Assembly: GCA_965649825.1 (NCBI GenBank)
Contig: OZ287698.1
Coordinates: forward strand, 325,949-389,948
Source of the DNA: Penicillus capitatus
Taxonomy: Eukaryota > Plantae > Chlorophyta
Length of the DNA stretch: 64,000 bases
Reading direction: 5' to 3'
Made by a program: the position numbers and the translations under genes. The stretch's first letter is position 1; each line of letters opens with the position of its first letter. This document shows positions 592-34,607 of this stretch, in pieces. Below the pieces are notes generated by a model, which was not told the DNA's origin, ran no database searches, and worked only from the letters and a program-made list of their open reading frames with translations.

Positions 592-668
592 GCCCAATGC
601 GTCCACACGCGCGTCGACTGCATCTCCGGCAGATTGGTCGTGATGTGACGTCCATATGCTCCGAAAAG

Positions 669-2376: not shown

Positions 2377-2377
2377 G

Positions 2378-3139
2378 TCATTTCTTAAGCTTGTCGCTCT
2401 TTGGACGGAGTTTGTTGAGAACAGGCGCCTCTTGGTAATGCTCATCATTCAGCAGCTCCCAGAACACACCCTTCGGCCGTTGGCGCATCGGTTGAGTGGC
2501 GTACGATTTCCATGGCGTCAAAATGAAGTCGACCGGGACATCGAACGCCTCCATTTGATGTGACGTGAGATCCATGACCTGCAGAGGATGCACCACTGTC
2601 ACGATCGTCGTCGACTCGCGAATGGCGCCGATCTCTGTCAGAATGGCACATTCCAGATCGCTTCCCATTCCGTGTTTGCCTTTTCCCACGCCAAGACGTT
2701 CGCCGCTCTGCGGATCGACCGCCAGCGATGGCACCACCACCAGATCCAAAGGCACTGGGTTTCTCAGCGGCACAACCGTCGCCATGGCATCCGCAGCATC
2801 TCGTAAGCGCGCCACATCACGTGTTCTGTAATGAAAAGGGATCTCGCGTTCAGAGATCGTCGCATACACGGCATTGGGTTGATCGAAGCAGGTCCATGCG
2901 AGGCTCTTGCCCAGATCGAGTACGAGATTGCGCAGCGATGTCTCGCGCACTGTGCGTTCGACTTTGACGACCTTCGCCTCGGCGAATTCCGACAGCGATG
3001 TCAGTCGATGCAGCGCAAAAGGTAACTCTTTAAAGAAGGGCAGTCGCCCGTAGAACGGCGGCCGCATGAATGTATGAACGGTTGTCTCTTCCATGGCCGT
3101 CCACACCCGCTGCCGCACTCGTCCTTTCCACGATGCCAT
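2378..3139 (-). CDS. 5-formyltetrahydrofolate cyclo-ligase-like protein (COG0212/MTHFSD-like)
   Basis: DLVVVPSLAVDPQSGERLGVGKG, TTIVTVVHPLQV and DVPVDFILTP. The likely ATG is 3139 (MASWKGRVRQRVW). Confidence 0.8.
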   Translation of the reverse strand: MASWKGRVRQRVWTAMEETTVHTFMRPPFYGRLPFFKELPFALHRLTSLSEFAEAKVVKVERTVRETSLRNLVLDLGKSLAWTCFDQPNAVYATISEREIPFHYRTRDVARLRDAADAMATVVPLRNPVPLDLVVVPSLAVDPQSGERLGVGKGKHGMGSDLECAILTEIGAIRESTTIVTVVHPLQVMDLTSHQMEAFDVPVDFILTPWKSYATQPMRQRPKGVFWELLNDEHYQEAPVLNKLRPKSDKLKK

Positions 3140-3318
3140 TTCGTTCGATACATTCCATCTGCCGTTTGAATTTGACCAACCCCGCAACGGGAGACGCGCA
3201 GGCTGTTTTGTCTCGGTCCTCACAGCAAACAACTTTTTTCAAGCGCGGTGCCCGTGCCGTCACGCATTTTGGTGCGTTTCTTCGCTGAGGGTGCGCGTTT
3301 GTCCGCTGCTAAACGAGC

Positions 3319-4299
3319 ATGAATTCCACGAACCCTCTCGTCTCGCCATCGTCGCCGTCGAACAAAGCAACGCGACAAAAAGAGTCGATGATCGCCCATG
3401 TGCCGACCGTCGTCGACGCCGAAGCCGAAGAGGAGCCCTTCGTCTTTTCCCCACGCATTTCTGACGACGGCTCAGCGGCGGGACCCAATCCAACCCGTCA
3501 CCGTCGTCGTCGCAAACTCATGCGTAATTTGCGCTCCGTCTTCTGCTGCCTGTCTCCACACGCTTCTCGACGTCGAGGTAAAGCGGAAGAAAATGGCTTC
3601 GCATCTGGTCACAGCAACGGAGCCCTCTCTCCCACTGTCCACCCTTCCGATGAACGTATGGAGTTCATCATCGGTCAACAAACACAAGAAGACAAACAGA
3701 AAAAAACACTTGTGTTAGATTTGGATGAAACACTCGTTCACTCTTCATTTAATCAAGTCCTCAATGCAGATTACGTTATACCGGTCGACATCGACGGGAA
3801 ACTGGTGGATGTGTATGTGCAGAAACGACCTGGTCTGGATTACTTTCTTCAACAAGTCTGTCCGACATTTGAAGTCGTGATCTTTACGGCGAGTCTGAGC
3901 AAGTATGCCAACCCTCTGCTGGATTTGCTGGATCCTGAGGAACAAGTGCGATGGAGACTCTTCCGTGAGGCATGCAGTACGCACAGGGGGACGTATGTCA
4001 AAGATCTGTGCCGTCTGGGTCGTGAGCTCTCGCACACGGTCATCATTGATAACTCCCCTCTCTCTTATGTCTTCCAACCGGGCAATGCCCTACCAATTAC
4101 AGCTTATTTGGGCGATCCAAATGATGATGCACTTTACCGTCTCCTTCCCGTTCTGGACGAACTTTCCAAGACAGATGATGTACGCGAATGTATCAAGAGA
4201 CTATTGGGCGAAGGCCATGCGATTCTTTCGGCCGCAGGGGAGGATGTGGCCGTGTCGATCGATGATCTCGAAAACAGGATCACGTCATCTTTCCCCTGA
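3319..4299 (+). CDS. SCP1/CTDSP-like small CTD phosphatase (NIF/FCP1 HAD domain), intronless
   Basis: KKTLVLDLDETLVHSS (DxDxT motif), KRPG, VVIFTAS, YVKDL and IIIDNSP-like motifs in a single 326-aa ORF. Confidence 0.92.
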   Translation: MNSTNPLVSPSSPSNKATRQKESMIAHVPTVVDAEAEEEPFVFSPRISDDGSAAGPNPTRHRRRRKLMRNLRSVFCCLSPHASRRRGKAEENGFASGHSNGALSPTVHPSDERMEFIIGQQTQEDKQKKTLVLDLDETLVHSSFNQVLNADYVIPVDIDGKLVDVYVQKRPGLDYFLQQVCPTFEVVIFTASLSKYANPLLDLLDPEEQVRWRLFREACSTHRGTYVKDLCRLGRELSHTVIIDNSPLSYVFQPGNALPITAYLGDPNDDALYRLLPVLDELSKTDDVRECIKRLLGEGHAILSAAGEDVAVSIDDLENRITSSFP

Positions 4300-4726
4300 T
4301 CTTGTCTGTCCGTCTCTTCATCGAACAGACACACACATAAAACGATGTACGCGTTCAATGCAGCGACAGCAACCGCATATGTGGTTTAATGATTCCTCAT
4401 CATTACTGGTCTGCTGATCACGAAATGTCTTGCTGCACAGATGGGTGTTTGGTTAATTGTTCGTTCTCATATTAATAATGTCTTTTCTACCTTCTTTACT
4501 GATGTGTATACACTTCAAACACGCAACAGCAATATGGGATCATCATTTTGCACGTCCGACCTGTGGTTTGACCCTCGACAGTAGATGAGAGACATCCGTC
4601 CGATCTGTCACCCTGAGTCACATAGAGTCTCTGGTGTAAAACGTCAAGTTCTGCATGTCCGTCACATCTGTCACATCAACGAAGCTATCTCGTGTCGCTC
4701 TCACGTTGCATGTGCACGTCGAGGAG

Positions 4727-14926: not shown

Positions 14927-16065
14927 TCAGTTCATTTTCTTTGAAGGATGATGGCGACTTTGATGACCATTATTATTTCCAAATGTCTCGCCATTCTTCT
15001 CGACATGCCCCGATTTCTTGGGTTTCTGATTTTTGATGTAGATGTTGCCCATGACCCCCACGAAAACAAAGGCCACCCCAATCCACTGCTGCATTAGGAG
15101 TGGTGTGCCACTCCAGAAAACGGAGAGCAAGATGCTAAAGAATTTGCGCGTTGTCGTCACCAGCACGGTCACGACGCTTCCATAAGATTTTAACATCCAG
15201 AAAATGAACAGCTGACCAATGGCCCCACAGAAACAGAACTGCAGAATATAGAGCTGAAAAAGAGGGTAGTGGGAAAAGAAATGAACAAATTCGGAACAGG
15301 CAGAGTGGATGCCCAGCATTTCGGCGACCACAAACAGTGTGGTCGAATAGACAGATAGCCAGAAATTGGTGGTAAACATCATATAGATGCCAGAATTGTG
15401 CCTGTACTGGCGATTGATATTGTCTTGGCGGGTGTTGGTATAGCCATCACAGAGCAGATTGAGTGCGCATAGGGTGTATCCCAGGAAGAGATTGGGCGAT
15501 GAGAGTTTGGAAACGGCCTTGGGGGAAGACTTGAATGAGAAAAGAGTGAGACCGGTGCAGAGAATCGCAACAACTGCCCATTCAGCAAAGCGATAGTGTA
15601 CGCTAAAAAGAAGGACCCCCATGAGCATCGTCGGAATCAGCTTGCACGATTTCAGAATGACCTGTCGTGCACAGAGAAGCTTTCTCACTCTTTTTGAAAG
15701 AGAGTTTGTCACACCTGAGCTGCGTAGTTGATATTCCTCAAGGAAGCGTATCCGAGAGATGGTCCCAATGTTGTTGTTACACCCACCGACCAGAAGGACT
15801 TGAGAGGAGGATAGTCTCGTCGGTTTTTAGCGTCTGGGAAGACTGAAAGAAGACTGAAAGAGACAACGAGGCAACCCAGGCCTTGGACGCAGGAGAGGAT
15901 CGCCATGTTGGCAAAGCGCTCGTTTTCTAGACCGAATCCTTCGGTCGAGAGACTCTCTTGGACAATTCCCTGAGTTAAGTATGAGACATAGATGCCCGTC
16001 GTACAGAGGACGAAATTCAAGACGTCAAGAACGCGCATGCTGGGCAAATGCTGAGTTCGAGACAA
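14927..16065 (-). CDS. UDP-galactose/UDP-glucose transporter (UTr3/SLC35B1, UAA family)
   Basis: GIYVSYLTQGIVQE, NINYAAQVILKSCKLIPTMLMG, DGYTNTRQD and VTTTRKFFSIL in a multi-TM protein. Confidence 0.9.
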
Positions 16066-16354
16066 GGTCAGTTGTTACGGGTTTACCTCAGGGTTCGCGC
16101 ATCTCTGACTTGATGCATGCATCTAGTCCTTGATTATACCGATGTTCCGAGTCTTCTGCCAGCAATTGAGATAGTTAAAACACTTAAAACTGTTCTCAAT
16201 CACACGGATAGCAGCAATCTGTAAAACAATAAGGATACCTTCGTCTCTCCTTGAACATCGCTCTTCTTTTTATACCTCTCGACCACTTGATCAGATGTGG
16301 TTGCATTTGTCGGAGACATATCATCCCGGACTGTATCGATGTTACCTGATTGAC

Positions 16355-17830
16355 AGAATTACTTGAATCGCTCTGATGATGTACTTGACTTCAACAACGC
16401 TGGCTGCGTCGAGCATGCTTTGGATGACGCCCTTCTTGCGTTGCTGTGAATCTCTGCCGGAATCTCTTGCGATGGCGAGGAACCCTTCGCACACTCCACG
16501 GATGTAGAGAGAATCGGATCTAACAACGAGATCTTTCTGTCCATCTTGTTCTTTTTTTGAGACATAGCCGCTGATATTAGATCTTGCCTGTTGACGGGAA
16601 TCGTCTCAACGTGCGCCGCGGTCGCGCACACGCGTAACGAGAAACGGGGGAACAGACCTGAGCAAGTGCAAATGCTACAGGTAGAGCGCATACAGCAAGC
16701 TAAATACCCCTCGGCACCCGCAGACCGCTGTCACATCAGAAACCAGCAGTGTGTCCAGTTAGTTCACGGGGCCGGAACCGTTGTCGCACACCCGTCACCT
16801 GTCGTGTACTGTTTACGGTCTGAGGCAGTGTTACGATCTCCTCCGCCCATGTTTGCAATTGCTCGGACGATTGTCTGGTCTGCGATGTGCAATCTGTGTC
16901 TTACATGTTCTGGTCCCAATCTGTTTATGCAGAGCTAAACAGCGGGGAGGAAATCACCGGGTGTATATTCCAATATGCGTCGAAAACACTCGGTAAGATG
17001 TTGTGTAATATCGAGCCTTGTTAATATTGGCTCGATCTTCTCGAATGTCCTTGCCAGAAAGACGTACGGCACAGGATCGCCTTTTATCCAGAATAAGCGA
17101 TCCTTATTATCGAAGGACGTATATGCAGTTGCACGATCCGAGTGCTTGTTTGTATCTCGCGTCCTGACGGGGATTTGTCGGACTATCGTGCGCCGCGGTC
17201 GCGCACACGCGTCAAGAGAACGGAGGAAGCAGGCCTGGGTCAATGAAAAGACAACAGGCCGGTGCACGCCCCGTCATCCAATACCCTTGGTTGCCCGCGG
17301 ACGGACGTCATGTCGCGAAGCTGCGACGTGTCCGGTCCGCGGGCCGGAACCGTTCGTGTGCACCCGTCACGGCCCGATCTACAGCAAAGTCACATCAACA
17401 GCTAGGTACAAGGTTGTATTACTTTTAGCGTTCGGCGTCGTGGAGCCTTCGAAATGCGTTTCGTACTGCCATCTGATCTTATACTAGCACTTCCTGCACA
17501 TCATTCAACCACGATCGCACGATGCAGCAGATCGCACCATCGGTTTCCTCGGGCTCGGACGGCGGTGCAGACATATTCGAGAGATCGTCGCTCTCTTCGG
17601 TCATTGCCATCTTCATATCGCTGTTTGATTCGGTGTCACCCATCCGTGGAAGTTTGGGCGTTTCCATTGACGATACGCCCATCTTGAAATCGAATTCATC
17701 GGCTTTGTTAAGACGTCTCGGTGCCGTCTGTTGATGACGACACTCGCATTCTGTCTTGTCCTTGGGAGAGAAACCTTTTTGGCTTCGTGATGATCTTCTT
17801 GTCGCCCTTTGTACGCTTCGTCCGTTCGTC
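16355..17830 (-). pseudogene. Degenerate DNA ligase I N-terminal (DNA-binding domain) fragment
   Basis: W.KGDPVPYVFLARTFEKIE...RL...LTECFRRI...PGDFLPAV*LCINRL has an in-frame TAG at 16935-16937 where LIG1 has Tyr. A later exon reads LYIRGVCEGFLAIARDSGRDSQQRKKGVIQSML...KYIIRAIQ. No adenylation domain follows before the next gene. Boundaries are approximate. Confidence 0.72.
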
Positions 17831-17858
17831 GTCGGTAGCAGTTAGTTCGTGCAGCTGT

Positions 17859-17990
17859 TGTCGTGTTCGTTGACGGACAACGGGTTGACGACGAAGGCGT
17901 ATAGCTTACAAAGACTATTTGTACAATGATTGTAAGAATTTATATAATCCTTTGGACAGCTGCACGAAGGTGGACAGCTGTCCACTGACA
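17859..17990 (-). repeat. 3' LTR of the TRIM (132 bp)
   Basis: Identical copy of 18540-18671, preceded on the minus strand by GGAAAGGGGGTGGGCACA. Confidence 0.9.
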
Positions 17991-18008
17991 TGTGCCCACC
18001 CCCTTTCC
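17991..18008 (-). other. Polypurine tract of the TRIM
   Basis: GGAAAGGGGGTGGGCACA lies immediately upstream of the 3' LTR. Confidence 0.65.
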
Positions 18009-18302
18009 GTTGTGCAGACTCCGAATAATGCGAACGGAACACATTTCACGATAGTCGGGATGTCATCAGGCTGGCCAGGAGTCGAACCAGGGCCATCGTC
18101 ACGTGGCTTCTCCCTCTGCGGCCCATTCGCCGCAGCTTTGTAGCTCTTACGTCTCTGAGACTTCAGCGCCGACTCTGGAAATTCGAACCGTACTTCACAG
18201 CGACAACACGTCCGTGGTGACCCAAATAGAAAACGTAAACACGGACAAAGTAACAACGAACGTAAACACAACAATGCGCAACAGCACGCTTATCGCAGCG
18301 TG

Positions 18303-18425
18303 AAACTGAAACGCAGCAACTCGGACGGTGGAACTGAAACACAACAACTCGGACGGTGGAACTGAAACTTAGCAGCTCGGACGGTGGAAGGTGGAACTGA
18401 AACACAGCAGCTCGGACGATGGAAC
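18303..18425. repeat. Tandem array of about four 28-bp units inside the TRIM
   Basis: Units resemble GAACTGAAACACAGCAGCTCGGACGGTG and start at about 18303, 18331, 18359 and 18394, with a 7-nt partial unit between the third and fourth. Confidence 0.9.
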
Positions 18426-18527
18426 GAACTACAGACTGCAGGTGGTAGGTAAAACGCTGTCACAACGGTCGTGTCTTGGAAAGTCTTCAGTCTTCGATGA
18501 CGGGATTCTATCGCCGGAATCTTTGTC

Positions 18528-18539
18528 GCTCCGAAACCA
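18528..18539 (-). other. Primer-binding site, initiator tRNA-Met type
   Basis: TGGTTTCGGAGC directly follows the 5' LTR and matches the plant-type tRNAiMet PBS TGGTATCAGAGC at 10 of 12 positions, one difference being G-U compatible. Confidence 0.7.
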
Positions 18540-18671
18540 TGTCGTGTTCGTTGACGGACAACGGGTTGACGACGAAGGCGTATAGCTTACAAAGACTATT
18601 TGTACAATGATTGTAAGAATTTATATAATCCTTTGGACAGCTGCACGAAGGTGGACAGCTGTCCACTGACA
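18540..18671 (-). repeat. 5' LTR of the TRIM (132 bp)
   Basis: Base-for-base identical to 17859-17990. On the minus strand it contains TATATAAA, TGTAA and the 16-bp palindrome GTGGACAGCTGTCCAC. Confidence 0.9.
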
Positions 18672-19632
18672 CTGTTCATGGAAGACAAACAGTTAATACG
18701 CGTTTGATCGAAGTGCGAAAGGTCACCTGCGTTCCTCGCTTGCGTCAGCCACGGCGCTTGGTCGCTTCTTCATCTTTTTCTTTTTTTTTCCGAGGACCGT
18801 CTGTCTTAATCGAGGACCTTTAGCCTTATCTGTCGCGTTGTCGTCGTAGTTTGCCGAAATAAGCCGAATGGCAGAATATGTACGGAACACTGCCGCAGAA
18901 AAGAGTCCTCCGTCAAATGCGCAAGTGTGCCACGAAAGAAACAACGTTTCAGCAGCTAAGTCACGACAGATATGGCGCGCTCCACGTTCCGATACTATGC
19001 ATGCAGAATGAGATCATCAGACGCATTAGCGCGTTCTTCAAATCGACATGCTGGGGGGCGAGGCTTCGTTAAAAGCACCAAGGTAGGATCGCCGAGGCAG
19101 AAGTGGTATAACCGATAGATCCCGGATCCATCGGTGACCGAGTGTAAGACACAAACACTGCACCCTCTGCGACAAGAAATGAGACAGAGACGACAATGCA
19201 TCGAAGGTTATCTTGGAGTTATCGAGACTGAAGCATCTTGGAGAGCCAAGACCTATTGCTTTGCGTCATGGGAATGCTTAGCTTCTTCTGCCCTTTGAGC
19301 ACCGGTTCTTGCGCAGAAGCGCCTAAGCGCCAGACCGTTACGCGATCCCTAATTGTTACCCATGGTTTCGCTGGGTATCCGAAGTATCGAAGCCAGGGAG
19401 ACACAAATCGCTTTTTTTGATGACAGCTAATGAACGCTTCTTTCTGTTTTTGCTTGCTAGTCTGGGAATGGTTTATTCTTCCGTGTAAGATACAAGTAGA
19501 CCTTATGAAACGAAACGAACGAACGAAGGGCCGAGATTTGCAACTCAAAACCGTCCAACGAAAGCAATGTCAGCGCATGTGACAGACATGCATGAATCTG
19601 AAAGGAAAGAACTAAGTGCGGCTCTCGTCTGT

Positions 19633-21908
19633 TCAATGCAGCTCATCTTCTAATTGATCGTAGCGGAACACGAAGTTGTCTTTCTTGCGGTAACACCAGC
19701 CGTTCATGAAGTTCTCTGGTTCCCCAGGAAGAGCCCCACCTGACAGAGCTTTGTCGAAGTAGATGTATCCACCTTCTTCAAAGTCTTTTGTGGTGGCCTT
19801 GGGCTCGCCAGATCGCTGGAACCAGGATTTATGCTCAACATGATATCGCCAGGATTGTCGTTTGAGTTCTTTAGCAGCACAATACTGTGCGATGTCGCCT
19901 GGGTGGAAGTAAAAAGCATAGAACAGTCCCTCTGTGTCCAGCTTCTGATAGAAGCCGGCATCTTCGAGCTGGGGTAACCGATGAATAGGGAAGCTGGCAG
20001 GAAGCTGCTGCGCGACACTGCGGCTGGTGTTCTGAGACAGCTGAGTCTTGTAATCACTGTCAACGGGTTGGGGCATCGATCGCCGACTGCATGCCTGCAG
20101 CAATTGTAAACTGGCAGCGGGGTTGCCTTCGAATGGACTAGGTAGGAGTGGAATACCAGATACGTCCGTACAGGACATGCTGATTTTATCGATCAGATCT
20201 GCAACATCCAGACTGGACAGAAAAGGATCCGCCACTTCCAAAGGTTCGTCTTTGGAGGAGGACGATGGACCACCAACACCACCGCTCAACACAGCCGCTT
20301 TGAAACCCAACGGCTTCTCTCGTAGACTATCTTGTGACAGCGACAGCTTCGTCACATTTCCTTGCATACCGTCCATCGATGACGACGATCCTTTTCCTCC
20401 GGTAGATCCCGAGAGTGACGCTGTCTCCAGCAAACTGCGTTTTGCATTTGGCTTCACCTCTGTAGCCAGTTCCAGCGATTTGGATTTTTCGGCCACGCCG
20501 CTGGCTGCCAGTTTTGGATAGTCCCCATCTTCCCCTGGGCAACATGACCTCCCACGATTCTTGCACACCCACTATTCCTTACCTTTTGGTGTATCCCACA
20601 CCGTCGGCGTTCGATTTCCCTGCGTTGCAGTGGTTGTGGTGGTGGTCGTAGGCGTCGTCGTAGTGGTGGTATTCCTACCAGCCGCCGCCAATGCAAATGA
20701 CATCGCACCGTTTGCCGGTTCAGTTTTGGCAGCAGCCCCACCGATCACGGCATTCTTTGCAGAAGGCGACGTCCCTTCGAGCTCCTCCGCCACTACATGA
20801 TTCGCTGACGGTGTCTCAGACATCGAGACACGGCGTTTCATACTGGACTGCGATGAAGCCGCCGATATCGGAGCCGGTCGAGCTGGCGCCTTCTTTTCCT
20901 CCTCCACGACAGTGGCAGCATTGCTTCCGTGTGCCAACAGCTGCGCCTTCACCGCTGCCGCCGCCGCACGTTCCTTCTCTCTTTCCCTTTCTGCCTGTTC
21001 CTCCTCTAAGTCATTCACCTTCTTTGCTTTCGATGTGATGGTTGCCGACTGGAGGCCAAGGGTCACATCATTCAAACGATCCAGCAACGGTGCATACGTT
21101 TCATCCACGCAATCAAAGCCCGAATCTTCGTCTTCGTTATCGGTTACGTAATACTCAACCATGTCTTTCAGCTCATCGATCTCTTCATGCGTAATCGTCC
21201 CATTGTCCAAACATCGCATGCATTGCTCCAATCGCGTGATGTGACTCTTATGCCGTACCACGAGCTCTTCCAGCTTCTGTTGCCTCTGAGATGGCTTCTT
21301 CCCACGTCTCGACCCATTGATGTTCTCCAATTCTGCCTCGAATTCATCAATCTACAGCACCCGATCACCGAACGAACGCACAAAGAGGCATCGTTGAAAC
21401 CTGCATTTGAAGAGCCTCAACTTGTTCATTCAGCCATTCCCGTGCCACCTGCCGGGCTTTTTCCTCGGGGTCCAGTTTTGCAGCCTGGCCCAATCCTGCT
21501 TTCGAGAATGCCTTTGTTTTTGCTTCCTTTTCACAGTGCTTAAATCGTTCCATCTCCTTCTCAATGTTTTTCCTCGCCTCCATGAGCACCGTCTTGTCCT
21601 TGATGTCACTCCCAGCAATCCTATGACATAGCACCTCACTCTTTTATCTAGAAACATCCGATATCTAACCATGTTTTGATCTGATCTCTTAACCGCTGCA
21701 ATTTTTTGATTTCTTTTTTCAAGTCAGCTTCGTATTTTTCCCGCTGACTCTGGCTCTCAGTTACGTAGACCTACCAAATGGCGATCCCCACAGGCGCCTC
21801 TTTCTCGAATTTTGCCTTTTCCCATATTTGGTCGAACTCGACGATGCCTTCCTGCACTTTCTTGAGCGTTCGGTCGATTTCCGCCTGGAGTTTTCGTGCC
21901 GCTCCCAT
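19633..21908 (-). CDS. NOT3: CCR4-NOT complex subunit 3
   Basis: N-terminus [40 protein letters not shown], and the C-terminal NOT box [11 protein letters not shown]...[13 protein letters not shown]. Confidence 0.92.
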
Positions 21909-22167
21909 TTTAGAGGCACCGTTTACGTTTCCCTCGGCAAGTGCGTCGTTAGGGTGACACACGACTGTGTCAAGAAAGAACGGGTTTCACGATGGCGCAC
22001 GAAGAGAGACGGCGCTACGCTTCTCTCTCCACAGCAGTAACAACAACAATAGCGGATGCGCACGTACACACGCAGGGCGACAATACACGTCTTGTTCCTA
22101 ATGAACGTCATTCCACGAACGCGGTGCTGCCCGCCTCATGCATCGACGGATCTTTCTCGCGGGAACG

Positions 22168-23086
22168 ATGGCTCAATCGCGTTATGCCTATGTCAAGAAC
22201 TATGAGCGCGAAATGGTTCTCTTGCCCAATTGTTGGGCTGTCGTCCGTCTCGATGGCCAAAGCTTCAGTCGGTGCGTCTCACACGACGGAAACGACGACC
22301 GGACGGTTGGACTGAACGCAGGTTCTGTCAAGTACATGAATTCGAGAAGCCAAATGATGTCCGAGGCCTCGATCTCATGAACGCCGCGGCCAAGGCAGTC
22401 ATGAAAGCCTTTCCAGATGTGTGTATTGCCTACGGCGAGAGCGATGAAATGAGCTTTGTCTTCCGCAAAGATGCCGAAGTCTACGGTTTGTTTGATTGGA
22501 CTGGAGTACTTAAAAGAGGTTCTGTGAACAAGAGGTGGACGCAGCTTCAAAATTGTGTCCCTCGTGACCTCGTGCTTCACGGGAAACTACGTGCACTTAT
22601 GGCCTGATCACTTTCCCGAAAGACCTCTGAAATACGCTCCGCTTTTTGACGGCCGAGTGGTGCAGTACCCGACTGCCCGGGAGATTCGAGACTATTTGTC
22701 ATGGAGACAGGTGGATACACACATTAACAATCAGGTGCGTTGCCCCCTGCCAAGACTCATGTTCAACATTGTTGCAGTACAATACGTGTTTCTGGGCGCT
22801 GGTTAAATCCGGCGTGTCTGAACATACTGCACATGAGCAACTAAAAGTGTGATCGATCACATTGATCAGAATGTGTGATAATGCTGTGGACTACAGGGAA
22901 CAGATGCAAGTGCAAAGAACGAACTGTTATTTGGGAGATTTGGAATCAATTACAACAATCTACCGGAGATGTTTCGAAAGGGCTCAGTCATCTATCGTCA
23001 GGCAATACGATCAGCAAGAACACTGTTGGTGGACCATGTGGACATCATTAAGGAAGACTTTTGGGAAGCCCATCGTCATGTGTTAG
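22168..23086 (+). CDS. THG1: tRNA(His) guanylyltransferase
   Basis: MAQSRYAYVKNYE...VVRLDGQSF, FEKPND.RGLDLMN, YGESDEMSF, FDGRVVQYP...[21 protein letters not shown] and FGINYN. Confidence 0.92.
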
Positions 23087-23329
23087 AATGAGGAAGAAGT
23101 GTCAGGTGCCCTCATTTCACAAGCATGATAATTGCCGCGTTACATTGGTTCATCAGTGTCTTTGTATAAAAGAGTCCCAAATACATAGGACAGCGATTTA
23201 TGTAGAGGAAAGAGCTGTGTTTCGATAGGGTCAATAAGAATCACAAAAAAACGAAAGAAAGGTCCTTTATCTTGCAAGCCTCATAACAGCCCCATGATAT
23301 CAATGATAGTCACCATCATTTCCTACGAA

Positions 23330-26300
23330 TTACGCTTGGATGACCTCAGGTGTAATTGCCAGAGAGTCGACATTTGTCACTATCCAAGCGAGATTTTGGT
23401 AATAGTCAGCCTCTGCCTGTTGATCAGCCCGGAACCACTTTTCGAGCACTCGGTCTCCTGGGCCGGAGGCAGAAGCAAAAAGAAGCGCATTGATGTTGGA
23501 AGGCACATCCAACGTCGTTCCCTCGTCTCCATCCGATTTTGCACCATCCTTGTTTCCGCCACTCCCGCGCATCATTCTCTGTTCTGTGAGGAGTTTTCTC
23601 TCTGAAGTAGGGGGTGGGGGTGGTCGTTGGGGATGGGGTCTTTGATGATCTAAGCACTGATGAAGAAGATTGTCTAGGAAGACATTCGCGGCAGACATTC
23701 TGCCGACATCATTGGACGTTGATTTTCCATTGAGGGCGTTGGGTGCCCGTGCTAACCTTTCCGCTTCTCTCTTATTATTCGACTTGGAAATCTTCTCAGC
23801 CAGTGTCAGTTCAGATGCAAGAGACTGCTCAGTAATCGACCAGTATTCGTCCCAGAACTCTTCAACGGGATCTGTTCGTGCTGAAAAAGCAGCTCTCATC
23901 GAAATGGACTGTCCTAGTCGATGAATACCACCCTTCTCCACATCTGCTGGAGTTGAAAGGCTTCTGTGTGTTTGATTAGAAGGTTTGTCGCAAGCGGGTG
24001 GTTCTCCGGAACGGCGACGCAGGCCACTAAACCATGAACGGCGCTGCAATGGTGACATCTCGGTGTCAGGAGTCACGCGCTGGCCCTTCTCTACTAATCC
24101 AAAAGTTGAGTCACTCGGTAACGAAGAACCAAATTCCTGTGTCGTACACTTCTTTGATCGTGAGGGACGATCTGAAAGCGCTGTTAGTTTGCTGGGACGA
24201 CTGCGGAGCGACTGTATTGCAGAGCTTGCTCTCATAGAGGTGCTCGATGACGGGCTACGACCAACAAGGAAAGAATCAGAGAATCTCTCATTCTCCATGC
24301 CACATGGCCCCATACTTCCTGGGTCTGTCATTGCCTCTTGGCGTTGTAGACGAGCAAGTGTTTTCTGAAATGCAAGGCGCGATCCGCCACGTTGCCTTCG
24401 GTTGACACCGTCGTGCAAACGAACTTCGATGACAGGGTTGACAGCAAGCAATTCCTCAAAACTATCCAGAACGGGTGCCTTTGACGCAGGCAGTTGGAAT
24501 TCTTTCTCTTCCTGTGTTGATCGAAACCAGAAATTCAGACTCCACCCCGAGGATGATTCTTTACTCGTCTGCTCAGATGCGAGCTTAGATTCCGGGTCTC
24601 CTGTTCTGCTGATCACAGGAACGGGGAAAAACTCAATCTGAGAGGCTTTCAGAGATGCCTTTGCCATGACTGATCACACAGACACGTCACATCAGGCAAC
24701 ACATCCACAAAGAGAGAGAATCTCACAGTTGTCATTGATGATGGATGGGCGCGTGCCCAGCGACGCACTCGGTCTCAGTGCAAAGTTTTGAAGCTGCTGT
24801 TCCCAGTCGACACCGCAATGAAGCAAATAATCGGATTCCAATTCCCAAATATTTGCTTTGTCATGTTGCGGAATGAAGTGTCCCAGAAATAGATTGATCG
24901 CATCCTGCTTCTCAGGATCAGAAACAGCGTTGCTGTAGTACCGTCTAAACCACACAATGCCACAAGGAATGTTAGAGGAGAGCTCCGGAAAGAGGGATGG
25001 TGAGGGACTTGATCGAACGCAGGAGCTCTCGTGATTGTGTTGCTGCCCCAGAGTCCCCACGCATCCGTTCAAAGAAAGTCCCATGCGCTTCGGAGCCACC
25101 GTACTGTAATGCCAAGACATTTCCCATGATTTCATACATCTGCATCAACTGATATGCCATTGAACAGTCAGGATCCAGCTCGTTGGAGGCGAGCAGCCCC
25201 AAAGAGCAGAGCTGATATCCAAGCGCCGTCAGTCCATACATGTACTGTGAGATGTTGGTGCGATCTAAGCAATCGATGCAATTGCAACGGAGAATCCCTT
25301 CCTGCAACTGGGGTTCTGCCTTCTGCACAGATTGTGTCATTGCCGGTGAGATCATGCAGAATCCTGTGTACTCCACAAAAGACCGCATCATCGGTTCTGC
25401 TTCCTTCAACAGGCAACGTTCATCTTTTCGCACGTTTGCTTTGAAATCCCACGGAACGTAAACGATGTCTTCTCCGTAGTAATGTTTGTTGAGAAAGGAA
25501 ATGGCTCGGCTAAACTCTTTGCGGAGAATGGTCTCACGCGGCTGTCGTTCCTGACTCTTGACGAGATTCATAACCACAACCGGAGCGCCGTATCGTGCAA
25601 ACAGGTCTTCAAAGTGTTTGCGGGTGGCCTCATACAGAGGATCTATATTGTACAGCTGAATATTGGGACGCGGGTTAAGTGCCGATGTCCCTTGCCCCCA
25701 AAACAATGGAATTGACCCACGCAGCTGCACAGCAAACAACCCATCAGCAATAGCCCTTATGATCGTGCTCTCTATACCTGGACAACCGAAGCGAGTGAGG
25801 GAATGCCAGAGTGAGTGAGATTCTGTAGACTGACAATCTGTTCTGTTTCCACTTCATTTGCAACCCATCCGAATTGGTTGATGCCTCTCTTCAGATACCG
25901 AGTTCCGGCGAATCTTCTCGATCTCCGCGCAATGAGAGTGAGTTGCACAATTTTCCCAAAGATTGAAAGATTTCTCTGTTGCCACGATCCATGTACCAAA
26001 GGCAACAGCCACTTGTTATCCCTCAGTTCGTGGCGTAAGTCGCGCGTCAGATACTCATTCCAGACAAAGATGCATTCGAATGGATCTGCCCTCTCTGTAT
26101 GTGTGAGATTATGTTGGACGGTGTGTGAGACGTGGTAGGTGTAGCTGAAGAAGAAGTCTTTTGTTAGATCCACACCCGAAAGCAGCAGCTTTCTGTAGCG
26201 CCGCTCGGCATAACTGTCCGGACAGCCGCCACCACTCAACGGTATCAGCGTCGTATCTGCTACACCATACACCGTGTGACCCGCCAAAGATCCCAGCGCT

Positions 26301-26728
26301 TTTCGCTTCGTAATTAGCAGCAGATAGTAGCCCTCGAGGAAACGAAAGCATCCCAGAATGCCAAAAGCCTAAAGAGGGATCCGTCTGTGCCAATATCGTT
26401 TCCGTAACGGAGGCGTTACTTCGCAAAGGAGTTGAAGTCCTTCCTCGTTCGGATCTGCGTGTTTCCGCTGGAAGAGCGATTCGACTTCCGTCGGAGTGTA
26501 TGTTCGTTCGTCTTCAGCAACATGAAGCCGCTTTGGATGTTGTTCTTGTGTTTTGGGGAACGTTAGTAGACGACAACGTGTCTCTTCGCCATAGTATCCG
26601 AGCATGTAGTACGCCTTTTTGGATTCATATAGCAGCATGCGTTGCAACACTTCCGGGTCAACGGGTCGCAAAACTGTCCACGTGCGGGGCTTCCTAGTGG
26701 GCGGTGTGTCGAGACCAAACAACGTCAT
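23330..26728 (-). CDS. SAC-domain phosphoinositide phosphatase, FIG4/SAC1-5-like
   Basis: DLTKDFFFSYTY, LIARRSRRFAGTRYLKRG, VANEVETEQ, RGSIPLFWGQ and the catalytic CIDCLDRTN. Confidence 0.9.
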
Positions 26729-26838
26729 CGTCGTTTGTGTGTAACGAGGCGGGAATAGAAAAATTCAAAAGATACGGAGCCAAACCGTTAAGGCCTGACC
26801 TCGTATGACACGATGCGTCTATGTGGTGATGTGACGTG

Positions 26839-27987
26839 TTAGTTGGACGGCGAGGCAGCGCCCACGTTCAATAGCATGTTGCCTGTACTCGGCAGATAGA
26901 TGACATTACGGCTCTTGCCCATCGTCTCGGCGACCTCTTTGGCAGCCTCGATGCGACGCAGTTCGACGAAACCGGGGCCGGCGCGAGCGGTGGCTTCAGA
27001 GATGAGCTTTGCAGCTTCACTCTCGCCCTCGGCCCGCGTCACAGCGGCGATCCTTTCCTGCGTGCGGAATATGATGTGACGTCTGTGATGTGACGTATCG
27101 CACTTGATCGGCTCGCAACACCACGAATTTCATCCGCTCTGCCTCCTGCTCTGCCACTTGTTTCGCCTCGACGGCTTTGGTGAACTGTACATGCATCATC
27201 TCTCACACTTCTCACTCTTTTCAAACGCACCTCGGTTCCAAAAGAGAGATGCGTAATGGACACATCGTCCAAGAGGATGTTGAATTCTTTGGCTCGTGCC
27301 GTGAGACTCGCCCGGATCTATTCAAGATCAAAAGTGTGAGATCCATCACACTTCTGAAATGACAGCTCACCGCTTGAGAGACTTGTTCTCTCTTTGTGAT
27401 CAGATGCTCCGCATTGTACTGGGCCACGATCGCCTTGACCACTTCCGTTCCGATGGACGGCAACACTCTCTCATCCCAGTCCAGCCCCAACGTCTACTCA
27501 GATCACACATTTTTCGAACGTGTCGTGCAGAGAACGATCACACTTTAAAAATGAGTGGCAGCGCTTCTCTGTTGGGTTTGGAAAGCACACGCACTGTCAT
27601 GTTCACCATCTGGAGATCTGTGCAAGCACTAGGATGGCATCTCTTTCGGAGAAGAGGCCTCCCGTGCCTTTGGTTCCGGTGACGGATGATAGAGATCTGG
27701 GGCGGGTGCGGACGTCCATCACATAGGGACGCTGTAGCACAGGGATCAGAAAATGCGTTCCTTCTCCTGTCGTTTTGGGCAACACGCCGCGAAAACGATC
27801 AAAAAGAACAGCCCTTTCGCCGCCGTCAACTGAATGGATACATCAACGCGTGACCTCGATCGTCGTCTGCCTCACCTGTATAGAGCGACGTCTGCAGGAC
27901 GCCAGCGAACAGTCCGAGTCCCACGGAATATTTCGCCAAGTTGTTGAGAAGTCGTGCCAGAGCTTGAGCTGCTTGATTGTTTGCCAT
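26839..27987 (-). CDS. Prohibitin (PHB1/PHB3-like)
   Basis: [59 protein letters not shown] and [17 protein letters not shown]. It includes one GC-AG intron (27618-27667). Confidence 0.93.
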
Positions 27988-28053
27988 CTCTCAAACCAAT
28001 CGTCGCTGCCAAATGTCAACATCTGAGACATTTTCCCGTTTTACGGATCGGCG

Positions 28054-29281
28054 ATGCTCAACTGTACTATTGTTGAGGGATTGCTATATCTCTACTGGAT
28101 TCTCTGCTCCTCAGCTGCCCTTATCGCTCTACAGAACTGGCCATGGACGCAGCTTTTTCGGTAAGAGTGAGAGAACGTAGATGAGAAGCGAAAGAGTGAG
28201 ATTCTAGTCGAGCTGTTCTATTGTCGGCAGCAAGAGGAAAGACGTGGTCCACAAGGGACAAGAATCTGTCGGTCTTCTCTGTACCGTCTCTTTCCTCTGA
28301 GTTGTAAATCAAAAGGGATCGCCCTGTGTGGATGAAGGACTGGTCGGTGCCTCAGTTTTGCTTTTGGCATTTCTATGCTCTCGGGACAGCAGTCAGCTCA
28401 GCTCTCCTGTTCTGGTCGCTACAGAATCGATCCGTAAGCATCGTGAGAGAGCACGGATCGGATCGGACTGAGCTCAATATGCCGATCGTGCTGCTCTTTC
28501 TCTTTTGGATGCACGTGGTGCGGAGATTACTCGAGACATGTTGTCTGATGAAGTATCCGGCTTCTGCCAAAATGCATCTGTTTGCATACCTCTATGGAAT
28601 GAGGTCACTCACTCTTTTTTACCAAAAGAGTGACGTTGTGTCTGTGATTTAGCTACTACATTTCGGTGCCGGTTTCTGTAACGCTACCGTCTCTCTGTGC
28701 ATCAACAAACATGAGAGTCATGGACATCGCAGAAATGGTCACCCAAATAAGGACAGTCAATGAACGCCGCAAAATTGAAACGCTGTTTTTCGTGATGGTA
28801 TCTCACTCTTTGCATTTTGCATGATGGTGCTACGATACCCCAGGGCATCATTCTCTTTCTCATGGGATCCTGGATTCAGTTTCGCTCACACTATCACCTT
28901 GCACATTTGCAGACGGGGAATGGAAACAAAGAAGTGTATCTCATTCCCAAAGGTCCGTCAACTAGCTCACTCGCCTACTGCATATGATGTGACATCCTTC
29001 TTCTTTTAGGCGGATGGTTTGAGTACGTATCCTGTCCGCATTACTTTGGAGAGATTTTGATCTACTGTGGATTCTCGTTGCTGAGTGGATGGCGACCATT
29101 GGTACTGCTCATCAATACATGGGTGGTATGTATTGTCTTTCGATCTCTGCTGCACCGCCGCTCTGTGTGTCCGTAGTTGCTGAATCTCATTTTGGGTGCT
29201 CGGGAGATGCATCGATGGTATATCCGTCGCTTTACAGAGTATCCGGTACATCGCCGCGCTCTGATTCCGTTTCTCTACTGA
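28054..29281 (+). CDS. Polyprenol reductase (SRD5A3/PPRD)
   Basis: VPQFCFWHFY, HVVRRLLE...AKMHLFAYLYG, YLIPKGGWFEYVSCPHYFGEILIY and HRWYIRRFTEYPVHRRALIPFLY* (TGA at 29279-29281). Confidence 0.9.
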
Positions 29282-30656
29282 GTAACAGTGCCGAATTTCA
29301 GAACTTCGTTTCCCCAAGCCATCCATCCCGGAACGATCTCCCTCGCAAACATCTCCAGACATCGCGTCTCCCGTTTTCCAATCAGAAGATCTCGCAACAG
29401 CAAATGCATCGGCGGTTTTCGAGAGTGCTCTCGCCGAGAATCCACGATCACAACATCCCGCGGCACAGCGTCTAGCATTGCCGAAGGTACCGATACAGGA
29501 ACCGTGAGAAACAGACGTTCGTATGGACGATGATGATGATTATCGAACGAACTGATCACCTGCCCACGCCCATCGATCTTGATCCAATACCTCCGCCAAC
29601 ACATACATTCGATCCTGGACACAGGACGGGCGAGGTACACCATGTCGCAATGTGTTTGAGCTGCCACAGAGGAAGCTGTTGTTGAAGGAAGTAGTCTTGC
29701 AGCTTCATTCGGTTCGTCATCCAGAAACATACAAAGCTGATCTGAACATCCAATAGATATGTGCATCGATACGCGGAGAAAGAGAAGGGTACGGTATCAG
29801 AGGTGTCCAGTAGCTGTGTGAAAGGAAGGCGATTGAGTTGCCTGTTTGGAAGGCTGCGATAAGGATGTTGCCGGTGAACACTCTTGTTCTCCCACGGCGG
29901 ATCGACCAGTACCAATCCAAACTGCCCCTGCTCCTCGGCATCTGCCTTTCAGCTTTTCTCCGTGCGAAAACGGATGTGACGTCAACACCTTTCAGTAAGG
30001 GACCGAGTCGTGCGATGTCGGAAAGAAGGAAACCAGATTTCGGTGGCATGGAGATGAGACACTGATAGGCCTGACACGCAACCGTCACATCATCATCGTT
30101 ACGGTGCACCTTGCCAAAGAGGTCTGCCCATCTTCTCACATATTTTGATGTGACGGGCATCTATTGAAGAGCACCTTGTTCATCGCTCTCTCCACCGAGC
30201 TTACGGAACTTGGGTTTGACACACCCCTTCATCTTCTCCAACGCCGGCCAATCCACAAAATCCTGTTCCGGACATTCACCTTGTGCCACTTGACCAGGCA
30301 GTTCATTGCAAGTGCCATTGCTGTCGATCCAGCAGGACAATGTGTGAGAGTGCCCTCCATTTCTCACTCTTTCGTCTTCAAACACCTCAAACGCTCTCAA
30401 CAAGAGTGGCATGATGACACGGTGCTCTGCGTTCGCTCTCTCTTCCTGTGCATTTGCTTGGTACTCTTTCCCTCTCTTTCTTCGTCTCTTTACGCACCGT
30501 CCCTTCATGCAGACCCGTGAGGTAACGATGTGACTGGCGAACGCATTTGACGACTGACCATGTGCGTCTTCGGTACGTCCGAGAGATTTACCTCTCGGAT
30601 CTTGGCGTCGAGCTGTCGCCGTCAACGTTGGCCGGTCGTCTCAACAACGACGTCAT
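29275..30656 (-). CDS. METTL4: MT-A70 family N6-adenine methyltransferase, METTL4-like
   Basis: Catalytic VDPPWENKS, FWMTNR, W.W.KI...G, HHRPYERL, HSRKPP and LEMFARE..PGW..WGNEVLKF. The start is inferred from a spliced ATG at 30656. Confidence 0.85.
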
Positions 30657-30692
30657 TCGTCGTTAACTACTGTGCGTTTAATGTACTAACGG

Positions 30693-31766
30693 ATGCGAGC
30701 CGAGTCTCGGAGTGACCTGCCAATGTCGACGGCACATGACTTCCTATTTACTCCTCAGGTCCCAGCCAACGCATTTTCCCGCCATTCTCAAAACCCGCTG
30801 TCATTTCAGGTATACCGACCGAAGATCACGCATCGAAGACGAACAGCGCCGAGCAATGTCACGCGCGATACGCTCGAAGAAAACGATGAACAAGAGCGAC
30901 AGCGTTGGAATCGACGTCTCGCTAGATACCAAATCTACAACCACGAGCAGTTCCACCACACTCGAGTGAATGCTTCGCACAGATATCGACCGATAGAGGA
31001 GGGGGGCGATTCTGTAGCCGCTTGAACGGGGAAGGACGTTTTGGGATAACTGGAAGATCGTCGACAAGAGTCGGGGGAAATACGAAGCCGCACAGGAGTA
31101 TCGGCCACTGAACCCAATACTCAACACCCTTGACAACTATCCAAAGCCACCTCCATCTGGAAAGTACGCCTGTGTGTCTGCTTCGCCCTTGCCTGCGAAG
31201 CTCCATCGTCAGAGGCCGTGTCAAGAGAACGGCAGATCCCAGTCCAGTCCTTGTACCGTGGATGGAGGAAGAGGATCGTCCGCTTAGCGATCCGACCGTC
31301 TCGGAGCCCATCGTCGTGCCTTACCGTCCGCCAACGTCGTTACGAAGTGCTAACTTGCGTTTCGGCGATTACGATCCGATTAGGTCGATCAACGCTTTAC
31401 TCGACATCGTCTCTGTGCATCGTGTGCACGACTACAGATGCGATTGGATTGTGGAACCGGAGGATTGTCGACGCCGTGATGACGCGGGCTATCTTCCTCT
31501 CAAAGGTCACATCACTTATCGGATCGTTCACCGTGATGCGCTTGCACCGGACGGTAGGGAGAAGGCACGTGATCGAAGGAGTGAGCATGGGGATTGAGAG
31601 CAGAGAGGAGGATCTCGCTGTGCGAGGGGGCAAGAAGAAAATACCCTTGCCGGCCGAACAGGGGATCTACGATCCGATTAAGAATGCCTGGCTGGTAGCG
31701 CCAGAGAATAAACAGATCTGCGTCGGGCTGGCATTTGCGCCGGTACCGAAATATCATTTTCGTTAG
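30693..31766 (+). CDS. Hypothetical protein, multi-exon
   Basis: Open frames joined by plausible roughly 50-nt GT-AG introns, with repeated short YDPI motifs. I recognised no family. Confidence 0.5.
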
Positions 31767-31786
31767 AGCACAAGCAGTGATGGATG

Positions 31787-32966
31787 CTACAGCGTTTTAA
31801 CATCTTGTACGGCAGATACGCGGGTTCCTCGCCATTGGGGAGCGTCAAAAACGCACGTGCCTTCTAGCAATATCTGTTGGCCAGATTCGGACGCCGCCTT
31901 GCAAATGAATACATGCCGACCGTGCGACGCAATGTCGGCACATTCAATGACCTTGCCATGAATACCGCCTGTACGACGCAAAGGCAGATCGAGCGCTATG
32001 TGTCGCGATTCTGTCGGCATGACCTGTGGTATCGTGTGTCTGGGTCGTGAAATGCACCTGCGATGCATCGCCATCCGCATACCATTCACCATCTAAGCAT
32101 CACACAAAGGCGTCACCCTTATGAGACATGCCAACGATGTTTAACTCTCATGGACGAAGATCTGACGAATGAGTTGTGCGTTCTCCTCTTCCGGCGAGCG
32201 ATCGTAGAGACCGTCTACGTTTGTCTGGACATCGATGCCGTCGACGTCAAGACTGAGGGAGGTTTTGTGGGAGACGGACCAGAAAGACGACGTACTCTGG
32301 TTCGAGTGCGGAGGCGAGATGTTTGATGATGACATCGCCACTGCTCACAAAACAGCGACGGTCACACTTCTCACTCTATCTGTCACATCACCTGAGAATG
32401 GTACACCCTTGCTTCTCGTCCAGAATACAGTCGCCATGCAGCACAGGAACGAATCCCGCTTCCAGCAGCGCCGCGATTCCGTCGACGGATCCGTCAGCGA
32501 CCTGCCACGTGAACTGCGCTGAGTTAAGGCGCCGTCGATCCGTGTGCCTCGCCTGGCGATTCGACGTCGTCCAGAAGCCACACGGGGAAACGCCGACGGC
32601 CGGAATGCCGTTGTCGATCAAGGCAGACACCACCATCGTATTGAGCTTTCGCACCGAATTCCTGAACCACAGCGGCCAGTCATAGCGATCCGTTCGATCT
32701 CCAACGACCCACCGCGTTTCGACGAATCCTGTTCGAACGGCGGCTTTGTGAACGCCGCCTCGATCGACGCCGGTCCGACTGGCCTGAAAATGCCCGAACG
32801 ATCCCGCGCCGTGCACGACGACAAAGTCTGCCGTCGAGTTCTGAGCATAGACCTGCTTCAATTGCTCCGCGACGTCGCAAAGGACGGATCCGTTGAGTGT
32901 CTCGAAAGAGGCTTTATCGGTTACAGCAGCCCCTCCCAATTTCACGATGAATCGTATGGCAACCAT
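31787..32966 (-). CDS. IPK: Isopentenyl phosphate kinase (amino-acid-kinase family)
   Basis: IVKLGGAAVTDK, VVVHGAGSFGHFQA, GFVPVLHGDC, ILSGDVII..L, TNVDGLYD and HDTTGGI..KV. Confidence 0.88.
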
Positions 32967-33427
32967 ATAAACACGGCGCAAGTCATTCAAGTGACCTTCA
33001 GTCTCTCGATAAGATTAGAAAACGACATGTCCCATGCGATATAACCGACTCCTGTTGAATCCTCTCTTCGGATGGCCTTGATCCGTCCTGTCTACGAGAG
33101 TGGTATTGGTCGGTGATGAATGTATACTGTCTACGAGCGACAAATCTCGATACTGCTCATGAAAATAGCTCCTATGCCCGAAAACGCAACCCAAACGCCA
33201 TCACATACTTCACACCCTTCATGTCTACATGCATTGCGCCGTACTTTGATTTATTATTCAGCAAGTGGGTATTACACTGCAAAGGACGGTCCAGGAAGAT
33301 AAAAATGTACAGTAGTAGATAGAAAGGTGAGGAAATCACGCAGGACAATCACAACTAAGACTTGAGTCATGAGTACGTTGCGGTGAACGGAATGGTGTCT
33401 CGAGCTGTGGCGCATCCATGCTATGGT

Positions 33428-33835
33428 TTATTGATCGTTTGAAAGATCCCCTCTCGACTTCGCTCGCATGATGGTACCGGAGGCAGCGACTTCCACAACG
33501 AATTCCTCTTCCTCTGTCGTGGCGTCGTTGGTCATCGTCCCCACGACAAAATCTTGAGGCTCAGTGACGGGTTCTCGAACACCGGTCTCCGAATCTGTTG
33601 TCTCGTCATCTTCTTCGGAGGACGGCTGGGTGCTGCTCTGTTCTTCGTGTTGGGGAGCATGCTCATCGAATTGGCTGTAGATGTGGACACCATCTTCGCT
33701 CGTGTGACTGCTCTCAGATGCAAATTGCGGTTTCGTTTCCTCGTTATGGACTGGATTATCGCGAGGTTTTGCCTGGGCAACGGGAATGGACGGCTCTTGC
33801 GAGCGGCGTCTCTCAGAACAGCAAACCGCTCCCAT
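33428..33835 (-). CDS. Small acidic hypothetical protein with an N-terminal MGxxCC acylation-type motif
   Basis: A 135-aa ORF with a genuine ATG, MGAVCCSE..., followed by a Glu/Ser/Thr-rich disordered body. Confidence 0.55.
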   Translation of the reverse strand: MGAVCCSERRRSQEPSIPVAQAKPRDNPVHNEETKPQFASESSHTSEDGVHIYSQFDEHAPQHEEQSSTQPSSEEDDETTDSETGVREPVTEPQDFVVGTMTNDATTEEEEFVVEVAASGTIMRAKSRGDLSNDQ

Positions 33836-34607
33836 CCGTTCGGGTCGTCTCTACACGGGACGAATGGCAACGAAGAGACGTTGTGCAGCGCACTGCGCGA
33901 AATGGCGTTAAATAACGTCTTGATAAGATGTAAGCCGCAAAACGCGTTTGCCTCGATGGCCGCGTCTGGATTGGTGCGCAGCGACGAACGTTTAGGAATC
34001 TTTGAGATTCCAGCAAGGCTCTGAAGGTTCAACCGCTGAGTTTTGTCATGTACATTGCAAATGATGATTCGGAAACCGTCGTCCATTGGTGGACTTCGAC
34101 AACCGGATGCCACCCATTCGGCTTTGCATCTCGTTTCATCAGAATCGTCCTCAAACATCACGGCTCTACAAATACCGCGCGTTGCTTATCTGCGGAACCG
34201 AAGGCGAAGTGTCGCGGCGGAGACGACGTCGTGAGCTGAAGGAAGACGCTCTCCAAACCGAAGGCCTTCCGTTGTGTCGTGCCCAGATCGTAGACATCGG
34301 CCAAACACGGCGACGGGACTGTGGCGCTTCTCATCCGCATCGCGGTCTGTCTATCTCAAGCTTGTCTGCAGGTCACTTAACGGTTGGGCGAATGGTGTCG
34401 TCTCGTCGCATTGGGAACTCTTTATGAACAATCGACCATTGAGCGGCATCTTGACAGAAAAGAGCTACTCTACTCATCGCAGTAACAACGTACACACACT
34501 CAAGCAGTGTACATCATAGCCAGAAACAATTCTGCAACGGACCGTTGAGGCAATATACGCAAACGCATGAGCTTGATAGGGAGAGAGAGATATCAAGTGT
34601 TTATTTT

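Follow-up and report, generated by a model that had tools for sequence, protein, structure and literature searches.

A probable terminal-repeat retrotransposon in miniature in a gene-dense eukaryotic stretch, with diverged long terminal repeats in a second sequence record

We asked what kind of element lies in the gap between two genes of a 64-kb stretch of contig OZ287698.1 (64,000 nucleotides, hereafter the window, numbered from its first letter), and whether it belongs to a mobile family. A reading of the letters alone (the original prediction) had described a complete retroelement bounded by two long terminal repeats (LTRs) and resembling a terminal-repeat retrotransposon in miniature (TRIM). 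We conclude that the element is very probably a TRIM-class, non-autonomous LTR retrotransposon. The core of that description, a complete and non-coding TRIM-like element, was strengthened by the finding of diverged relatives of its LTR that carry duplications of their own. Coordinates of all features are collected in Table 1.

A repeat finder run over the whole window returned only one family of long direct repeats, namely the two LTRs, which are identical at 132 of 132 positions and lie 681 bp apart. On the minus strand each LTR starts with TGTCAG and finishes with CGACA, and the pair is flanked by a 4-bp target-site duplication; a 5-bp duplication, AACAG, is possible only by assigning the last A of the LTR to the duplication. 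The 12-mer TGGTTTCGGAGC resembles a primer-binding site at the inner border of the 5' LTR, and the polypurine tract GGAAAGGGGGTGGG stands at the inner border of the 3' LTR. Read on the plus strand, the same borders give TGTGCCC... and ...CGAAACCA, and the primer site and purine tract therefore exist only in the minus-strand orientation. The identical repeats with TGTC...GACA ends, the CTGT duplication, the abutting primer site and the purine tract were thus all recovered where they had been predicted. We simulated chance values with the base composition of the window and obtained 0.4% for the 4-bp duplication, 0.4% for the TG..CA ends, 0.3% for the purine tract, and 2.5e-5 for a TGG-initiated 12-mer that agrees with the primer site of plant tRNAiMet in at least 10 of 12 positions. 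Beside a perfect 132-bp repeat, the combination of all these features is far beyond chance. Further copies in the window were sought with an LTR 42-mer, a primer-site 16-mer, repeat finding and an nhmmer profile of the LTR, and none was found; the 42-mer, with up to three mismatches allowed, hit two sites only, both of them the LTRs.

Table 1. Positions of the element, its parts and the relatives of its LTR (window coordinates unless a locus of OZ245997.1 is named).
Feature	Position	Strand	Remarks
Whole element	17859-18671	minus	813 bp, between two genes
3' LTR, TGTC...GACA, 132 bp	17859-17990	minus	100% identical to 18540-18671; LTR-family profile E 1.4e-40
5' LTR, 132 bp	18540-18671	minus	Direct repeat of 17859-17990; family-profile match
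Target-site duplication beside 3' LTR	17855-17858	plus CTGT / minus ACAG	Read directly
Target-site duplication beside 5' LTR	18672-18675	plus CTGT	Identical to the 4 nt at 17855-17858
Primer-binding-site-like 12-mer TGGTTTCGGAGC	18528-18539	minus	Abuts 5' LTR directly
Polypurine tract GGAAAGGGGGTGGG	17995-18008	minus	13/14 purines; 4 nt (CACA) before 3' LTR
Internal domain, 549 bp, non-coding	17991-18539	minus	No protein, Pfam or Rfam match
Tandem repeat, 28-35-bp unit	18300-18424	minus	About 4.5 copies, 85-90% alike; inside internal domain
TATATAAA in 3' LTR	17939-17946	minus	LTR positions 45-52; core ATAAAT(T)C kept in all related LTRs
TATATAAA in 5' LTR, candidate Pol II TATA box	18620-18627	minus	Core conserved in all LTR relatives
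16-nt perfect palindrome GTGGACAGCTGTCCAC, U3 of 3' LTR	17970-17985	minus	Central E-box CAGCTG
Second CAGCTG	17953-17963	minus	18 nt downstream of palindrome
ATAGTCTTTG	18590-18599	minus	About 28 nt downstream of TATA box; (C/T)AGTCTTTG conserved in family
LTR relative, L004	6011-6142		87% identical, full length; flanks ACGG/ACGG
LTR relative, L005	5380-5249		84% identical; flanks ATATA/ATATA
LTR relative, L003	3025-2876		150-bp variant; flanks CCGT/TCGT
LTR relative, L003	1723-2145		About 423-bp variant, about 250-bp insert; flanks GCCCC/GCCTC

The first 22 nt of the LTR occurred four times in OZ245997.1, a record of the GTDB genome collection, and had no match in JGI metagenome contigs or in IMG/VR. 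BLAST, alignment and an nhmmer profile identified four diverged LTR relatives in this record, about 72-87% identical over the alignable parts, in blocks at 752-760 kb (L003), 128-136 kb (L004) and 1240-1248 kb (L005). They are homologues of the LTR and show no homology to the interior, and three of the four are flanked by 4-5-bp duplications of their own. No TGG... primer site or purine run borders them and no partner LTR is present in their 8-kb blocks; we therefore regard them as solo LTRs, which LTR retrotransposons commonly leave behind through recombination. No LTR match was found in two relatives of the host, L011 (RPC2 90% identical) and L012 (SAC phosphatase 69% identical). A 19-21-mer that runs from the end of the LTR into the primer site, CACGACATGGTTTCGGAGC(GA), had five exact matches in JGI metagenome contigs of 56-64% guanine plus cytosine (GC) (L006-L010). 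We rejected these as copies of the element, as they comprise four copies of one bacterial locus and one other, with no similarity beyond the 19-21 nt; such chance matches are a caution for scans with short patterns.

The element is situated in a 3.57-kb spacer (16066-19632) that separates a NOT2/3/5 gene from a gene for a UAA-type nucleotide-sugar transporter. The ENA contig ctg340486_42x_l (1.02 Mb, assembly ERZ25074695), which has one protein of the window on record, carries the element base for base. It is identical to the window over 14975-19887, which includes the element, and over 30392-35730, and differs from it in 19888-30391 by about 45 single-nucleotide polymorphisms and two small indels; a second haplotype or strain, identical to the window in blocks, would look like this. 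That two independent sequence versions of the locus contain the element argues against an assembly artefact and, taken with dispersed LTR relatives that have duplications, points to a mobile LTR family. In the relative L012 (Logan SRR33785045), the genes stand in the same order, SAC - Thg1 - NOT2/3/5 - UAA transporter, but the gap between the last two genes is 198 bp (15863-16060). The whole 3.57-kb spacer, element included, is therefore lineage-specific, and it is decaying. Also in the spacer are 54 aa of the N-terminal domain of DNA ligase 1 (16938-17100, minus; E 5e-7 to PDB LIG1), a fragment with no space for the remainder of the gene, and a 72-nt repeat at 16610-16681 and 17187-17258 (78% identical).

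The 549-bp interior has no long open reading frame, as predicted; the longest is 119 aa, has a TTG start and extends into the 3' LTR. We joined every stop-free stretch of at least 20 aa from the six frames of the element into a composite query, which gave no match at E<=1 among 5.8 billion proteins, and so no open reading frame called on another copy. There was no Pfam family in the open reading frames of the element, and the gene caller of the public assembly called no gene in it. Neither hammerhead, tRNA or 5S nor any other Rfam family matched the window at the gathering score; at E<=10 the interval 17700-18850 gave three weak matches to unrelated families and again no hammerhead, tRNA or 5S, and ARAGORN reported no tRNA. 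The interior does contain an 11-mer, GGTTCGACTCC (18088-18078, minus), that lies within a T-arm-like hairpin and fits the RNA polymerase III (Pol III) B-box consensus. On reading, no A box was noticed beside it, there is no tRNA fold, and we treat it as incidental. Just upstream is a perfect 7-bp hairpin, CTGCGGC-GAATGG-GCCGCAG; the 11-mer and this hairpin fall within 18078-18135 (minus).

We compared the LTR copies for conserved blocks. Kept across all of them are (i) the first ~34 nt, which contain the palindrome GTGGACAGCTGTCCAC and the second CAGCTG; (ii) ATAAAT(T)C; (iii) (C/T)AGTCTTTG, ~28 nt further along; (iv) ACGCCTTCGTCGT; and (v) the terminal CGACA. Judged from the motifs, this order would correspond to a layout of U3 enhancer, TATA box, initiator and U5, with ATAGTCTTTG as an initiator-like candidate transcription start. 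No part of the family is better conserved than the paired CAGCTG boxes, which are likely an enhancer and integrase-end region. The palindrome is unchanged in all family members found, which is partly a matter of ascertainment. The motif TGTAA, present at LTR positions 81-85 of both LTRs, had been proposed as a chlorophyte-type poly(A) signal. We could not uphold this proposal: TGTAA is not enriched in the window (61 observed versus 64 expected), and the related LTRs have TGCAA, TGTTG or TGTTA at that position.

The structure could be mimicked by an assembly artefact or by a plain tandem duplication with a 681-bp period, for which the perfect identity of the two copies and the metagenome-type long-read assembly might speak. 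Such an origin is barely credible, as it would leave unexplained the TG..CA ends, the 4-bp duplication and the exact placement of primer site and purine tract at the inner borders; moreover, the 132-bp unit is dispersed as diverged copies with their own duplications in OZ245997.1, and the second version of the locus has the same structure. A different history is that a full-length autonomous element inserted here and lost gag-pol in situ by a single internal deletion; the 813-bp structure would then never have moved in its miniature form, and no TRIM family would exist. The solo state of all other family members found, the single full-length copy and an interior that matches nothing else in the sequence examined are compatible with this. 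We nevertheless consider it unlikely, given that no remnant of Gag or Pol was found in any frame, that the interior tandem array is typical of established non-autonomous elements, and that the deletion must have preceded any substitution in 2 x 132 bp. The element might also be a TRIM of a special subtype, either a retrozyme, which has hammerhead ribozymes in its LTRs and makes circular RNA, or a Pol III-driven element of the Cassandra, Helenus or Ajax type, with 5S or tRNA sequence in its LTRs. Retrozymes have a 4-bp duplication and a similar size, and the B-box-like 11-mer would suit a Pol III element. However, that 11-mer lies in the interior, outside the LTR, and is not accompanied by a recognizable A box; neither the Rfam search of 17700-18850 nor ARAGORN offered a hammerhead, tRNA or 5S; and the conserved TATA box and initiator-like motif in the LTR point to RNA polymerase II (Pol II), which makes a special subtype very improbable.

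Several points weigh against a TRIM-class retrotransposon and the family we assign to it: (i) only one full-length copy is known; (ii) no Gag-Pol partner was present in the window or in the loci examined; (iii) the LTR relatives lie in a different record, whose loci correlate with the window in tetranucleotide usage at 0.72-0.75, versus 0.88-0.96 among the window's own chunks; (iv) no exact empty-site allele was seen, since L012, the only syntenic relative, is without the entire spacer; and (v) no tRNA gene was found in the window or in related loci. A further difficulty concerns the tRNA complementary to the primer site. The primer site begins with TGGTTT, which would imply A73 and A72 and hence U1, an unusual U1-A72/U2-A71 acceptor stem; initiator tRNAs carry A1-U72, unlike this stem. 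Compared with the primer site of plant tRNAiMet, TGGTATCAGAGC, a 12-mer quoted in 36 papers, TGGTTTCGGAGC agrees in 10 of 12 positions. A tRNAiMet identity of the primer, as suggested by the original prediction, is not supported. Self-priming of the Tf1 type was rejected, as the primer site has no complementarity to the LTR, and a literature search for the primer-site sequence returned unrelated primers and small hairpin RNAs only.

With these points in mind, the TRIM assignment rests on a close fit to published descriptions. TRIMs have a total length below about 1 kb (PMC10886601), and the element shares with them (PMC4717578, PMC10886601) a size under 1 kb, two short LTRs with TG...CA ends in the range of roughly 100-250 bp, a short interior without coding capacity, bordered by a putative primer site and by a purine tract (the latter next to the 3' LTR), a target-site duplication and a gene-rich location. 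It differs from plant TRIMs in its 4-bp duplication, versus the usual 5 bp; its interior, 549 bp with a tandem array, is on the long side for a TRIM, and it has no sequence similarity to anything found in the searches made. Like SMARTs (small LTR retrotransposons, 292 bp) and LARDs (large retrotransposon derivatives), it would depend, being non-autonomous, on the Gag-Pol of a partner; the difference is one of size class only, as the element exceeds a SMART in length and falls far short of a LARD. Cassandra, Helenus and Ajax, the Pol III TRIMs, share the TRIM architecture (PMC10886601, PMC7215508), and animal Helenus elements also make 4-bp duplications, linked to Gypsy partners (PMC10886601, PMC7215508). 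In contrast to these, the LTR studied here shows a TATA box and an initiator-like motif in place of 5S- or tRNA-derived sequence. Retrozymes, plant non-autonomous LTR elements with hammerhead ribozymes (PMC5680766), resemble the element in being small and non-coding and in having a primer site, a purine tract and a 4-bp duplication, but no hammerhead ribozyme was detected here, even at E<=10.

The original prediction had regarded TRIMs as little described in compact algal genomes. The literature speaks otherwise: the class, defined for plants, is now known from green and red algae as well (PMC4717578, PMC10886601). Chlamydomonas, Volvox and Chondrus are reported to have TRIMs, and Ostreococcus, Chlorella and Cyanidioschyzon yielded none (PMC4717578); TRIMs are also annotated in the haptophyte Tisochrysis (PMC5963040). 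Outside algae and plants they are known in insects, cestodes, bivalves and fungi (PMC10886601).

The original prediction had also called the insertion apparently very young and had deduced from this an active or recently active partner. Zero differences over 132 LTR positions bound the divergence at <0.023 (95%), which corresponds to an age of <0.9 Myr at 1.3e-8 per site per year and <11 Myr at 1e-9. To call the insertion recent is fair; the identity of the LTRs gives only this bound, however, and an upper limit of 0.9-11 Myr does not carry the stronger wording or the active partner drawn from it.

LTR retrotransposons cycle through Pol II transcription, reverse transcription, here by the enzymes of a partner, and integrase-mediated insertion with a staggered cut (PMC10886601). 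Applied to this element, Pol II would start in the 5' LTR ~28 nt downstream of TATAAA, at the conserved AGTC and near LTR position 75, and stop in the 3' LTR. An autonomous LTR element would supply the Gag, reverse transcriptase and RNase H that package and copy the RNA in trans. The minus strand would be primed by a cellular RNA paired to TGGTTTCGGAGC and the plus strand by the purine tract; a tRNA primer would end 3' in ...GCUCCGAAACCA, give or take one mismatch. The partner's integrase would then join the TG...CA ends through a 4-bp staggered cut, giving ACAG/ACAG. In animals, 4-bp duplications are linked to Gypsy-type partners, and Copia gives 5 bp. By this analogy, the length of the duplication, 4 bp here and 5 bp in one or two relatives, gives a hint of a Ty3/Gypsy-type partner over a Copia-type one.

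We turned to the identity of the host. The window is eukaryotic and gene-dense (about one gene per 2 kb), with short introns, and encodes RPC2, NOT2/3/5, a SAC phosphatase, Thg1, CstF-77, Vps52, sortilin and others; two rounds of Pfam searches on it gave housekeeping genes only. The best matches to named proteins are about equally far from land plants, fungi and animals (37% for SAC, 55-69% for RPC2). The earlier attribution to a chlorophyte with a compact algal genome found no footing here, as the window sequence bears no mark of an alga and its best protein matches are roughly equidistant from plants, fungi and animals. Two 8-mers are very strongly over-represented in the window, GATGTGAC (44 times) and AAGAGTGA (30 times), which sit in ~50-nt introns, for example at 15660-15712 (minus), 24686, 32382 and 42242, and at ~2330-2400 of L004. 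At the 3' ends of introns stands TGATGTGAC(A)G, which looks like a branch-point and 3' splice-site motif, and AAAAGAGTGAGA is positioned mid-intron. This intron architecture is unusually stereotyped and could be matched to no known lineage.

OZ245997.1 shares the intron-end motif TGATGTGACAG with the lineage of the window's host, and an intron in the Thi4 gene of L004 ends in ...TCTGATGTGACAG, a motif that is massively over-represented in the window. In tetranucleotide correlation with the window, its loci stand above L011 (0.65), L012 (0.50) and bacterial contigs (~0.43). These sequence similarities suggest that the LTR relatives belong to the host lineage, either to the same species in a different compartment or to a close relative; the relation is uncertain. 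The record is titled "MAG: Putridiphycobacter sp." (a metagenome-assembled genome (MAG) of Flavobacteriales, 6.9 Mb), yet the L003-L005 loci are eukaryotic. Their content includes Thi4 with a spliceosomal intron and a ubiquitin-family domain (both in L004) and the LTR relics, at 47-50% GC. The likely explanation is that OZ245997.1 comes from a eukaryote of the window's lineage and was mis-binned or mislabelled.

A broader proposal would be that the element is one active member of a TRIM/LTR family restricted to an undescribed, deep-branching and gene-dense lineage of microbial eukaryotes with a stereotyped intron motif, partly filed as a bacterial MAG, and that two species of the lineage have the family by common descent or by transfer from one to the other. 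We put this forward tentatively and hold it to be rather unlikely as a whole. If true, the LTR family would be usable as a lineage marker, and its paired CAGCTG, TATA box and initiator would form a natural Pol II promoter cassette for an organism without genetic tools. The element itself fits the textbook TRIM structure and on its own matters little. Its presence indicates that the host has, or had until recently, an LTR-retrotransposon system whose integrase works, and the conserved U3 and core-promoter layout may offer a first look at the Pol II promoter signals of this lineage. As a matter of database hygiene, use of the LTR as a probe exposed eukaryotic sequence in a record titled as a MAG of Flavobacteriales.

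Some minor observations concern the loci of the LTR relatives. The ~423-bp LTR variant of L003 has the GATGTGAC motif directly upstream of its TATAAA, and it lies head-to-head with the 150-bp variant of the same locus. In L005, positions 145-4395 encode an intron-less, NLR-like open reading frame of 1416 aa with NB-ARC and TPR domains, whose C-terminus consists of nine 129-bp repeats that are 94-99% identical. The solo LTR of L005 lies ~850 bp downstream of this open reading frame.

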